Of a stretch of 64,000 nucleotides of DNA, positions 48,801 through 54,800 are shown one piece after another. The stretch comes from Macrostomum lignano. Its lineage: Eukaryota. The stretch spans positions 1 through 64,000 of the forward strand of contig NIVC01002802.1 in NCBI GenBank assembly GCA_002269645.1, given 5' to 3'. The stretch's first letter is position 1, and every line of letters begins with the position of its first letter. The notes under the pieces were generated by a model. The model was given only the letters and a program-made list of their open reading frames with translations, had not been told where the DNA came from and did no database searches. Both the position numbers and the translations under genes were made by a program.

Positions 48801-51800
48801 GACAGACAGACAGACAGAAAGACAGACAGACAGACACACAGACAGACAGACAGACAGACAGACAGACAGACAGACAGACAGACAGACAGACAGACAGACA
48901 GACAGACAGAAAGACAGACAGACAGACAGACAGCATTAACTGTCTTTCGCCTTAGAGAAGTAAATGAAAAAGGAATAAACGAATAAAATGAAACAAAACT
49001 CAGAGTCCAGCATAAAGGAACTGTATTGGCATATAAATTCTACAAGCTACACAAAAACGTCATGCGTACAATATCAGTACAGCTAAAGGAAACAATCTAT
49101 TCACATAATATTTAAATAAGTTTATCACATAGTATCACAAAAATTGAAGAAGAAAAACACAAAAACTTCAAACGCCAACCTTTCTAGAAGCCGACTTGTC
49201 ACCGGCACCAGGGTTCAGTTTGAGGTCGTTGAGCCGCCGGACAACATCCTCGACTTGTGAGACTGCCTTGTCAACCTCTTCTTGAGCATTCTCAGCTGAT
49301 TCCTCGCCTTGACCAGGGTACTCGGCAATCCCTGAATAATTAATTACTTATGTATTTGTATTAATACTGAATTATAATACTGACAGTAGGAGAAAGTTTT
49401 TACTCTTTAAAAATATCATGGGGGATGGCAACTGCTAATTATCTGCAATAATTAATCATCGTTAATTGATTTATTAATTTATTAATCATTCAAATTATGG
49501 ACTGTCACAAAAAACCCCGACATGCAGAACAAACAGGCAAGGGAAGAGTCGAATTTACATTACTATAATTAATGATTCTAGGAAATCACTCCATCACACT
49601 ACTAACCATAAGTAGAAAACTACTTATATTCCACTATTTTCAATCCAGTTGGATAAAAAAAATTATAAACGTAAAAACTGGGTCTTTTATTGTCTATATT
49701 TAAAACACTTATGGAATACCTGACAGGCGGTGACAAACTCTTGAGGCTGGTTGGTGATTGCTAGCTGCAATAGGGGTGGGGACATTTGAAGGTCAAAATA
49801 GCAGAGAAGTTATCGTTCACCTACGCTACAGGACAGACACAGTCAGCAAAATGACTACAAAATAGCGCGCAAAGGGTATGATTGCAGGTAAACTACAGGT
49901 GAAAATGAAAAATGAAAGCACATAAGCATTTAATTATATCATATTATAAATGTAAACATAAACAATAGCTAACAAAAGCTCGCAACTGATTTGTGTTCAA
50001 CTCAGCAAAACTATTTATTAGATAAAAATTGCAATTTTTGTTTGCCACAAATTAAATACAACTGTGTACACATAGGTTCCAGTCAGTCCGAGATATTCAG
50101 TAAAAGCTCCGCTTAAGCACGATAATATTTTAAAATAATTGAAAATAAAGATATTTTACGATTCAGTGATATTGTTGTTAGTTGCCATTCATTTCATGTC
50201 GAATTTGTTTTTCGTTTAATTCTATCTGTGATTGATTAGATTAGCAATCCATGTTCTATTTATTAATCTCATCTGTGATTGACTAGATTAGCAATTTATA
50301 TTCTATTCCTATTAATCTCATCCATGATTGACTAGATTAGCAATCCATATTCTATTTATTAATCTCATCTGTGATTGACTAGATTAGCAATCCATATTCT
50401 ATTTATTAATCTCATCTGTGATTGACTAGATTAGCAATCCATATTCTATTTATTAATCTCATCTGTGATTGGCTAGATTAGCAATCCATATTCTATTTAT
50501 TAATCTTATCTGTGATTGACTAGATTAGCAATCCATGTTCTATTTATTAATCTTATCTGTGATTGGCTAGATTAGCAATCCATATTCTATTTATTAATCT
50601 TATCTGTGATTGACTAGATTAGCAATCCATGTTCTATTTATTAATCTTATCTGTGACTGGCTAGATTAGCAATCCATATTCTATTTAATCTTATCTGTGA
50701 CTGGCTAGATTAGCAATCCATATTCTATTTAATCTTATCTGTGACTGGCTAGATTAGCAATCCATATTCTATTTATTACTCTTATCTGTGACTGGCTAGA
50801 TTAGCAATCCATATTCTATTTAATCTTATCTGTGACTGGCTAGATTAGCAATCCATATTCTATTTAATCTTATCTGTGACTGGCTAGATTAGCAATCCAT
50901 ATTCTATTTATTACTCTTATCTGTGACTGGCTAGATTAGCAATCCATATTCTATTTAATCTTATCTGTGACTGGCTAGATTAGCAATCCATCACTTAACT
51001 TAAGGAGCAGTGTTTGTTGTGCATGAATTTTTTCGGTACTTAAATTTTCAATGTCAAGAAATAAAAAAATACCCATCTGAATATGTAAAATAAGGAAACA
51101 AGATGATTAGAAAACACCAGTTAAACAACAAGACCCATAAACATTCGAAAGACCTCATAAGCAGTTTAACAATGGTTGAAAGCATTCAGCCAATGCAAAA
51201 CCTGTTTGTAAATGTAGTTTATGAGAATAAATAATATCATGCAATTAAGCGAGCATTTTAAGCTACTTACTTAGTAAGTAGTATATTAACCGCAATTGGT
51301 CTTTCGAATGTTACTTATTAATAATAACCTGTAATCCAGCGACTAAACATTAGTGCATCTACTGACAACACGAGACCACCGAAACAGTGATAACTAAGGC
51401 TATCTAACTAAAAAACAGATATTAAAATCGAATATAATATAGATATAAATATGGGATGAAAATTATTAGATAGAGAAAAAGAAAACTAAAAGAAAAAGAC
51501 AACAAAACGTTAATTTTAATAATAATAAATTTTTCAATTAATTGTTTCAATTAATTGACTTGAAAAATGTAAACGATAAAGCAACACACCAGAATTTCTA
51601 TAATAACTGTATCGATGCCTGTGATAGGCTGCGTGGGCAGAGAACTTCTTCTCTGTGTAATCCCACCCTGCAAGTTGGAGGGGAAAAAGAAATTTTGGGG
51701 CAGAGTATAGATGAACATTTTTTTCTATGGAAATTCGAGACAAAATTAATATGCAATATATAGCTTTGAAAATACTTAACAACTATTTATATCCGTTAAA

Positions 51801-54800
51801 TTTACTGTCAGTATTAATTAATAAATTCTGGCTAAAAACATTCACGTCATACTACTATTTGTGAAAAAGTAGTATTAAAATTGCATTATAGTACTGTAGC
51901 AATGGCATTTATAAAGACAAAAAAGAGGTTTAACAATAAATATTGATAATTAAATCTAAACACCCATTAGATGAGGAAAGTAATTAAGAAAAAATGAAGC
52001 AACTAAACTTAAGTAAGAATGTAAAATAAACTATTTTTAATGTCAATCAATAAGATTTAACAACAGTGCAAATAGATTTAATTAAGTGCCAAATTTCATA
52101 ATAGCTACACATGCTGTATACAATTTTACTTGAACTAATGTGCAGATTTATTAAATATGTGCACACAATGAAATCTCTAATGCGAATAAACAATTTAATG
52201 TAAGTTCAATGTAGTGTAGAATTTTTAGAACAAACTTAGAACAATTGGGTTACGAGGGTCAAATGAGGGCACGAGGGTCAAATGGAGTCACAAAGGTCAA
52301 ATGGAGTCATGAGGGTCAAATGGAGTCACGAGGGTCAAATGGAGTCATGAGGGTCAAATGGGGGCACGAGGGTCAAATGGGTCAAGTGAGTTAGAGGTCA
52401 GCAGAGTGAAATGAGCTACGTGAGTTAATAAGTGATGCAGATGCATGCATAACTAAGCATTTATTACGAATTTCTAAAGAGTTAGTAAGGATAACAGTAA
52501 TTTAATATAAACAGTGGTAATATATGAGTACAAGCTAAGTGCAGTTGTAAGTAAAGTACTCACTACAAAAGGCCTTTCAATCAATTTCAGTGTTTTTATT
52601 ACAACAAAACACAAAAAAATAAACAATAACAAAAATAAATACTTCACAACAGAATTTGCTTAAGGAGCCATTTTGATAGATTTTTAAGTAAGTATTTATC
52701 AATCAATCAGTCAGTCAGTCAATCAATAAACCAATCAATCAATTAGTCAGTCAGTCGATAACTAATTAGTCATTTAATCAATCAATCAATAGGTCAATCA
52801 ATTAGTCAATAAATAAATAAATATATGAATCATTCATTCAATCAGTCGATCAATCAATCAGTCGATCAATCAATCAATCAATCAATCAACCAATCAATCA
52901 ATCAATCAACCAATTAATCAATAAATTAATCAATCAATCAATCAACCAATTAATCAATAAACCAATCAATCAATCAATCAATCAATCAATCAATCAATCA
53001 ATCAATCAATCAATCAATTAATCAATCAATCAATCAATCAATCAGTCAATCAATCAACCAATCAATCAATCAATCAACCAATTAATCAATAAATTAATCA
53101 ATCAATCAATCAACCAATTAATCAATAAACCAATCAATCAATCAATCAATCAATCAATCAATCAACCAATTAATCAATAAACCAATCAATCAATCAATAA
53201 ACCAATCAGTCAACAAACCAGTAAGTCAGTAAATAAATTAATGAACCAAAATCATATATAATAAAAAATACTCCTCGTAAACAAAGAGGTAAGCAAGCAA
53301 AATCACCCATCTATAAAAAAGGAATATATCAGTATAAATAAAAATAAATATTTTTTTAGCTATGTAACAATCGCCAATATGATATTATATTGAACATACA
53401 TTGCGGGGCACTTGGCCTGAAGTACATCACAAGCTTGGGTCCGACTGAAAAAATGCGATGGATAAAGAGAGAACATGGAAATTTAAGACTAAAAACCTGA
53501 AAACGTGTTATTATTAATTAATATATTATACACATTGCGTAGTGGTTAATATTATATTATAAGTTTATCAATAAGAAAAAAGAACTTTTGATTATAAATT
53601 AGTTCAATTAATATGATTCTAATTCTATTGTACTATGCGATGCAATACTAATAATACTATCTTAATTCACTTGGATTCACCGCAAATGTCCAATATTATT
53701 ATGCTCTAAGCTGATATTTGTTCCAATCAGTTAATTACATTATACAATATTATACAAAGCATGCAAACTTGGTTTTATAAAATAACCGTACGATAATTCA
53801 ATTATCAGCGCACAGCGCCTCACTGCACTACTCTTTATTGATGAAAAACGCATATAAGTAGTCAAGCTTGGAATATTGCAACCGAACTTTATTATTTTTC
53901 GTTGAAAAAATACCTGCAGTTAATAACTGTAACATCCTCACTGCACTACTTTTGTTTTATTTAAAAGCATACATATAAGTAGTCAAGCTTGGAATATTGC
54001 AACCGAACTTTATTATTTTTCGTTGAAAAAATACCTGCAGTTAATAACTGTAACATCCTCACTGCACTACTTTTGTTTTATTTAAAAGCATACATATAAG
54101 TAGTCAAGCTTGGAATATTGCAACCGAAATTTGAACATTTTAAAAGAAAAAAGTTGTGCTGGAATCAACTCACCTCGCATACTCTGAATGACAATATTTA
54201 ATTCTTGCAGTGCGTCGGCGATTTGTCTCGATAGGCCGGCCATTTTGCTGCGACCAGATTTACTAGGCGAATTGATTACTTCTAGTAGCATCTGCATCAG
54301 ATTCAAATAGCAGTGGCACAGATCTCTGGCTGTCATGTACAGTCGATAGCTCGGCTCGTCGAGGCCTTCAACGAATCTACCGCCATGAGGCTGATCTGAT
54401 GAGGCTGACTGATGCTGCTGCTGTTGATTTGGCTGGGAGTACATGGCGCAGGCCAGCTTCACGCCAGAGAGCAAGTCGGCCACAGCTTTTCGCGAGGTGT
54501 TGGCGGCGGCCATCACGTCAGACTGCTTGCTGGAGTTGGCAGCGTGCATCACGTGACTCGTGCCTGGCAATGTTTATAGGGTGGTTTAAGGGCGGTGTTG
54601 ATAGGTTGGTTTAAGGGCGATGTTTATAGGGTGGTTTAAGGGCGACGCTTATAGGGTGGTTTAAAGGCGATGTTTATAGGGTGGTTTAAAGGCGATGTTT
54701 ATAGGGTGGTTTAAGGGCGATGTTTATAGGGTGGTTTAAAGGCGATGTTTATAGGGTGGTTTAAGGGCGATGTTTATATGATGGTTTAAGGGCGATGTTT

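Follow-up and report, generated by a model that had tools for sequence, protein, structure and literature searches.

The R12/R13 junction of a talin gene

Talin provides the principal force-bearing connection from integrins to actin. The stretch of DNA analysed here (the window) comprises 64,000 nucleotides (nt) of contig NIVC01002802.1 from Macrostomum lignano, and translation and splice-site inspection showed that its minus strand carries the 3' half of a talin gene. We examined three short GC-rich segments, named c1, c2 and c3, in the intron that separates the exon for the end of rod domain R12 from the exon in which R13 begins, which a first-pass annotation of this DNA had described as a cluster of optional cassette exons. 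The analysis indicates that c1 is a real exon, that c2 is probably an optional cassette and that c3 is most likely a pseudo-exon. The GenBank protein PAA55146.1 is encoded by this contig (assembly GCA_002269645.1, Mlig_3_7), whose sequence is 100% identical to that of the window across the 5,501 nt that were compared.

The upstream exon closes with one codon base (phase 1), and the first two bases of the downstream exon complete a Gly codon. Joined directly (54174/49331), the two exons stay open as far as the stop at 42877. Aligned with 11 talins, the M. lignano junction ...SMR^G-IAEYPG (^ marks the exon border) lines up with ...AMK^G-TEWVDP elsewhere, the consensus in other talins being ...AE(A/L)(I/M)K^G(S/T)(D/E)WVDP(D/E)DP. 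This places the insertion site after the final R12 helix, at the point where the I/LWEQ/THATCH domain R13 begins, in agreement with the earlier assignment of the gene to talin and of the cluster to the R12/R13 junction. Pfam Talin_IBS2B and I_LWEQ are recorded on homologues, and the intron position (phase 1, K^G) is common to M. lignano and gastropod talin.

Three candidate segments in the R12-R13 intron

All three segments (Table 1) are bounded by AG and GT, have lengths that are multiples of 3 and are without stop in phase 1, and every combination of them gives sense junction codons and no stop. Read on the minus strand, the borders, lengths, splice contexts and openness in the host phase given in the first-pass annotation are correct, and so is the GC richness, with 45-nt peaks of 0.60, 0.58 and 0.56 where the intron averages 0.30. 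No other non-repeat 45-nt GC peak of the intron is as strong, and the sole additional peak of at least 0.55 is a 19-bp tandem repeat.

Table 1. Features of the talin R12/R13 region in the window
Feature	Position	Strand	Description	Basis
c1	53444-53400	-	45 nt, phase 1; acceptor ttttttcag, donor gtatgt; TCGG...GCAAT; peptide ...(W)	
c2	51667-51590	-	78 nt, phase 1; acceptor caacttgcag, donor gtgtgt; GGTGGG...ATTCTG; peptide (G/W)...(G/A)	
c3	49764-49720	-	45 nt, phase 1; acceptor ctattgcag, donor gtattc; CTAGC...CTGTCAG; peptide (A/S)...(G)	
Constitutive exon	54174-54563	-	End of R12	Splice sites, translation, alignment to talins, within PAA55146.1-matching model
Constitutive exon	49180-49331	-	Start of R13	Splice sites, translation, alignment to talins, within PAA55146.1-matching model
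R12-R13 interval	49332-54173	-	4,842 nt, GC 0.30; contains c1, c2, c3 and several tandem-repeat arrays	
47-bp tandem repeat	50216-50991	.	About 17 copies, between c2 and c3	
(GATT)n microsatellite	52698-53213	.	ATCA on plus strand, about 129 copies, between c1 and c2	

Frame preservation is by itself a weak filter: the intron holds 1,758 AG..GT pairs of 27-210 nt, 606 of which are multiples of 3 and 66 of these also open in phase 1. When the 1,758 pairs were ranked with generic splice-site matrices, c2 came 1st, c3 5th and c1 50th. The acceptor scores (1.1 for c1, 8.7 for c2, 6.0 for c3) and donor scores (0.3, 4.1 and 0.2) lie inside or above the range of the constitutive exons of the gene, which range from -6.4 to 3.6 for acceptors and from -3.1 to 10.3 for donors. 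More specifically, c2 has the best combination of acceptor and donor in the intron, with an acceptor that beats every constitutive one of the gene, and the acceptor of c3 ranks second in the intron. Combined thresholds (acceptor at least 1, donor at least 0, GC at least 0.44) were then applied to talin introns over 12.5 kb; on the sense strand 29 pairs passed, grouped at about seven sites, and on the antisense strand 2, and among them c1, c2 and c3 were the only ones both frame-preserving and open in the host phase. The segments separate in codon usage, with log-odds per codon of 0.73-0.90 for c1, intermediate values of 0.09-0.17 for c2 and about 0 for c3, in which another frame scores better (real-exon mean 0.84; 99th percentile of stop-free intron windows 0.64).

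We also considered the segments as repeats or transposon fragments and rejected this, no second copy of any of them being present in the window. Rbfox-type TGCATG motifs were not significantly enriched in the intron (4 observed, 2.4 expected). A Trp follows the junction in nearly all talins (G-S/T-D/E-W-V-D-P) and is missing from the M. lignano exon (G-I-A-E-Y-P), in which the Tyr of IAEYP may be its equivalent; a Trp arises at the junction codon of c1 and the downstream exon (T^GG), and the first full codon of c2 encodes Trp as well.

c1 as part of the dominant mRNA

The first two protein searches gave only talins 40-48% identical among the matches listed. These matches are 90%-cluster representatives of about 0.58-1.75 times the query length, by which talin of the same species was hidden, and the M. 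lignano fragments were missed at first because the representative of their cluster has no overlap with the query. Compared with cluster representatives, the exon at 57223-57933 (minus strand) matched UniProt A0A1I8G859 of Macrostomum lignano at 100%; the 90% cluster of this entry holds PAA93269.1 (2,808 amino acids, aa), PAA55146.1 (2,797 aa) and several UniProt fragments, the members being named M. lignano.

A 15-exon model with c1 at exactly the borders of Table 1 is identical to the C-terminal 1,224 aa of PAA55146.1, and PAA93269.1, the model of a paralogue, makes the same join from c1 to the 49331-type exon. Three UniProt models (A0A1I8IJF5, A0A1I8G6E8 and A0A1I8G7K6) also contain c1, so that among the GenBank and UniProt M. 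lignano models c1 is found in all five, c2 in the three UniProt ones and c3 in none. All credible models that cross the junction include c1. The direct 54174/49331 join occurs in no credible M. lignano talin model of GenBank or UniProt; two UniProt models, both of poor quality and frameshifted, run into exon 49331 from within the upstream exon, and these apparent direct joins were discarded as not credible.

Behind the GenBank annotation stands a genome-guided transcriptome, which StringTie and TACO assembled from RNA-seq together with a mapped de novo transcriptome; TACO was run with --isoform-frac 0.75, so that an isoform was kept only if it reached 0.75 of the major one (PMC5730564). Because this RNA-seq-derived annotation retains only isoforms near the major abundance, c1 is part of the dominant mRNA in whole worms. 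c1 is a real exon and behaves as one that is mainly or always included. The first-pass annotation had treated it as optional, which the models do not support, the RNA-seq-derived dominant isoform among them; its statement that the core exons already join without cassettes holds for the reading frame, but the join itself is not seen in any credible model.

c2 is probably an optional cassette

UniProt A0A1I8IJF5 is reproduced residue for residue by c1 from 53427 onward, c2 at exactly the borders of Table 1 and the downstream exons; an exact look-up of the same entry on the contigs did not find it. Two paralogous UniProt models also carry c2, and c2 is always accompanied by c1. In both GenBank models, PAA55146.1 and PAA93269.1, c2 is skipped and c1 is joined directly to 49331. 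Presence in one annotation and absence from the other is what is expected of a cassette, suggesting that c2 is probably optional. For the first-pass proposal of an optional middle exon, one set of models shows the exact borders and the other shows skipping. Its description of this segment as rich in Tyr, His and Arg is accurate, five tyrosines being encoded together with His and Arg. The literature search found no paper describing the difference between the GenBank and UniProt annotations as alternative splicing.

Comparison of three gene copies

The M. lignano genome is partly duplicated (PMC5730564), and two further copies of the locus (L002 and L004) were compared with the window copy. The R12-R13 intron shows 4.0% substitutions relative to the window copy (100/2,513 and 122/3,048), and the constitutive exons differ by 0-1.8% between copies. 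Neither c1 (0/45) nor c2 (0/78) differs in either paralogous copy, and c3 differs at 4/45 and 2/45 positions. The changes in c3 amount to four events, one synonymous and three non-synonymous, and its acceptor region is altered in one copy. From these substitutions, c1 and c2 appear compatible with constraint and c3 appears to behave like intron; the direction is clear.

c3 and the combinatorial proposal

c3 occurs in no GenBank or UniProt M. lignano talin model. Because of this absence, and because its divergence between copies equals or exceeds that of the intron, c3 most likely represents a pseudo-exon, and at most a rarely used, unconstrained exon. The same evidence speaks against the proposal that it is a cassette in its own right, its changes being mostly non-synonymous.

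The first-pass annotation had further pointed to the equal length of c1 and c3 as a pattern common in mutually exclusive exons, and had counted, with four more cassettes elsewhere, up to 128 possible combinations in this part of the gene. Homology of c1 and c3 by tandem duplication was tried and rejected: their local nucleotide alignment scores 5, where shuffled sequences average 6.2, and the peptides score -26 with BLOSUM62. For this pair the models contain c1 only. Since c1 and c3 are without similarity and c1 co-occurs with c2, mutual exclusion is unsupported, and behind the figure of 128 combinations we found no evidence. The site is an ordinary, largely recorded case of small in-frame exons and not a large combinatorial switch.

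Weighing the explanations

The explanation that we favour, at a probability of about 0.6, is that c1 is in the dominant mRNA, that c2 is optional after c1 and that c3 is a chance pseudo-exon. c1 would be spliced into the dominant mRNA and lengthen the R12-R13 linker by 15 residues; c2 would be added after it in a minority or tissue-restricted isoform, for 26 further residues; and c3 would be a chance pseudo-exon, or at most rarely used and unconstrained. Several observations weigh against this explanation. The longest GenBank products of both annotated copies (2,797 and 2,808 aa) are without c2, and since the longest product is the one recorded per gene, GenBank annotates none with c2 at either copy. 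The contrast between c2 inclusion and skipping is one between gene models, and c2 could be an ab initio prediction drawn to strong splice sites, because the models that contain it begin within c1 and other models of that origin are poor and carry frameshifts. The sequence flanking c2 is itself 98.6-98.8% identical, and the three copies share their history, so that the lack of differences in c1 and c2 is weak evidence and power is low. c3, for its part, retains AG, GT and an open frame in all three gene copies. The splice-site matrices, being generic, are a rough yardstick, and the combined thresholds were chosen after the candidates had been seen.

In a different explanation, c1 alone is real and constitutive, c2 is a gene-prediction artefact and c3 arose by chance, with no alternative splicing at the site. 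The UniProt/WormBase ParaSite models reportedly come from a pipeline combining evidence with ab initio prediction, and c2 may have entered them from a transcript or from the gene finder. All three c2-bearing models are 343-aa fragments beginning at a Met (an internal ATG) inside c1, neighbouring same-source models (from the third protein search) are frameshifted, the codon log-odds of c2 fall well below the real-exon mean, and both RNA-seq-derived models pass from c1 straight to 49331. Against an artefact stand the splice sites of c2, the strongest pair in the intron with an acceptor above every constitutive one, and its character as a GC island that reads open in the host phase and shows no difference among three copies. 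Furthermore, an isoform that falls short of 0.75 of the major one is dropped by the GenBank pipeline, so that the absence of c2 there is compatible with a minor isoform. We consider this explanation unlikely.

The original proposal, in which all three are optional cassettes that combine independently and c1 and c3 may exclude each other, draws on the symmetric phase-1 structure of all three, through which every combination reads, on the AG/GT borders and open frames kept in three gene copies and on the high rank of the c3 acceptor. It is quite improbable, as c3 is absent from every model, c1 is skipped in no credible one, the changes in c3 are mostly non-synonymous at or above the intronic rate, and the c1/c3 score is below the shuffle mean while c1 and c2 co-occur. 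A chance origin of all three, as open AG..GT segments of an AT-rich intron, could be argued from the 66 frame-preserving open pairs found there and from the weakness of the real splice sites of the gene, because of which decoys are plentiful; c1 and c2 at their exact borders nevertheless give public proteins residue for residue, one of them RNA-seq-derived. This leaves chance as a refuted explanation for c1, as the likeliest one for c3 and as hardly tenable for the three together.

Possible consequences for the linker

With our favoured explanation, in which c1 is mainly or always included and c2 is optional, the inserts of 15 and 26 residues lie directly before R13. An AlphaFold2 model of A0A1I8IJF5 (32-sequence alignment) gave a predicted local distance difference test score (pLDDT) of 38-53 for the c1/c2 part and of 70-95 for the THATCH core, with a low-confidence helix over c2 and a confident helical core after the insert. 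The model suggests that the inserts provide flexible linker length upstream of the THATCH domain, and we infer from the two sets of annotations that c2 may be truly alternative in vivo.

R13 and the dimerisation helix form the actin-binding site ABS3, which is thought to give talin its first force (PMC6032930), and given this role a longer linker could affect the geometry, the autoinhibitory packing or the way in which force is transmitted. The R12-R13 linker carries all the force that comes from actin bound at the C terminus. In addition, the five tyrosines of c2, together with its His and Arg residues, could add phospho- or pH-dependent contacts, with possible Tyr-based docking sites. As the exons are already in public gene models, the gain here is one of interpretation and not of new sequence features.

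Other features of the gene and its neighbourhood

Tandem arrays crowd the talin introns, and their lengths vary among the three gene copies. The motif TAGATTAGCAATCCATATT of the 47-bp array in Table 1 reappears in the last talin intron (about 43040-43100), and a repeat of about 33 bp occupies most of the intron 45239-44385 (arrays at 44400-45200).

Elsewhere in the gene, an 84-nt phase-2 exon at 56715-56798 (minus strand) is present in both GenBank talin models and has no counterpart in other talins; it is symmetric, was missed by the homology-based model and could be optional too. UniProt A0A1I8G859 instead ends soon after 57221 with a different tail. A proline-rich 87-nt phase-0 exon at 47981-48067 (minus strand) is present in the GenBank and UniProt models and has weak splice sites (acceptor -0.9, donor -3.1); together with the Ala/Gly/Ser-rich start of the next exon it makes up a lineage-specific insert of about 60 residues with an AlphaFold2 pLDDT below 50. 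Outside the window, the two GenBank talin copies differ in the N-terminal rod by LLIKDGSTPE (10 residues, 30 nt), which may be a small optional exon or a difference between the copies.

Downstream of talin lies a bestrophin-like gene (window 35700-37750, minus strand), in which open reading frames at about 37413-37748 look like the same family; the talin neighbour in the paralogous locus L004 (18322-23245) carries Pfam Bestrophin. An uninterrupted open reading frame of 995 codons at 17043-20027 (plus strand) stands in an otherwise intron-rich region and, by its motifs alone, resembles an M1-family aminopeptidase N; an exact match from three candidate starts was not found in the protein collection.

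Comparison with other talin linker exons

A parallel was found in gastropods. Four UniProt isoforms of Biomphalaria glabrata (A0A2C9KA86 and its isoforms) differ only at the junction, where they carry no insert, 2 residues (VS), 12 residues (DALQVRWSHWVA) or 15 residues (AQIDVCSFYDRKAAS, 45 nt). In Elysia chlorotica EGW08_014939 the orthologous insert DQINACLFFVKKAA is encoded by a 42-nt exon with cag and gtaagt sites, 3.5 kb into a 16.7-kb intron, and the peptides of the two species are related (BLOSUM62 35, P < 0.0002). As these heterobranch gastropods have a conserved cassette in the same intron, the site hosts optional exons in at least one other lineage. Three further candidates were set aside: a second Elysia cassette resembling Biomphalaria DALQVRWSHWVA gave only a weak match in the wrong frame; the 8-residue insert ASLNDLEE of Parelaphostrongylus tenuis was not counted, its model likely reading through a GC donor (AAG^GCAAGT); and a 2-aa insert at the junction in Haemonchus was seen in the protein only and was likewise not counted. 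The P. tenuis talin intron at the junction appears to be in phase 0 with a GC donor (L005, 3723-3900).

The gastropod cassette and the M. lignano segments are alike in their intron, in phase 1 and in the small size of the in-frame inserts (45/42, 36 and 6 nt in gastropods), and the gastropod inserts sit just before G-S-D-W-V-D-P. Compared with c1, the gastropod peptides match in position, phase and the length of 45 nt, with ungapped BLOSUM62 scores of -5 and +1 (shuffle P 0.06 and 0.02) that are borderline and short of significant similarity; compared with c3, they likewise show no significant sequence similarity. Judged on these sequences, the gastropod and M. lignano inserts are probably of independent origin. 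The parallel hints that the R12/R13 intron is a favoured place for small inserts, and we tentatively propose, at rather less than an even chance, that this phase-1 intron is a recurrent site where heterobranch gastropods and macrostomid flatworms independently gained optional exons; these would adjust the length and chemistry of the linker that passes force to the C-terminal actin-binding domain, and c2 would be a regulated, tissue-specific insert.

Among vertebrate talins, human TLN1 exon 17b is a 51-nt in-frame cassette between R1 and R2 that alters mechanical behaviour, and like the M. lignano exons it is small, in frame and lengthens the linker between rod bundles (PMC9997659). It differs in lying at R1-R2 instead of R12-R13, in its unrelated sequence and in having a function shown experimentally, whereas the M. 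lignano case is read from sequence. Mammalian TLN2 exon 54b is an exon extension between residues 2458 and 2459, brain-enriched in mouse (PMC2702505); both it and the M. lignano exons are in-frame insertions in the C-terminal actin-binding region, the TLN2 one being of 15 residues, tissue-specific and located inside R13 rather than at the R12/R13 junction. Small inserts between talin rod domains can change the mechanical response, as for TLN1 exon 17b, and the M. lignano exons are a lineage-specific member of this known class of small in-frame talin linker exons, of modest novelty.

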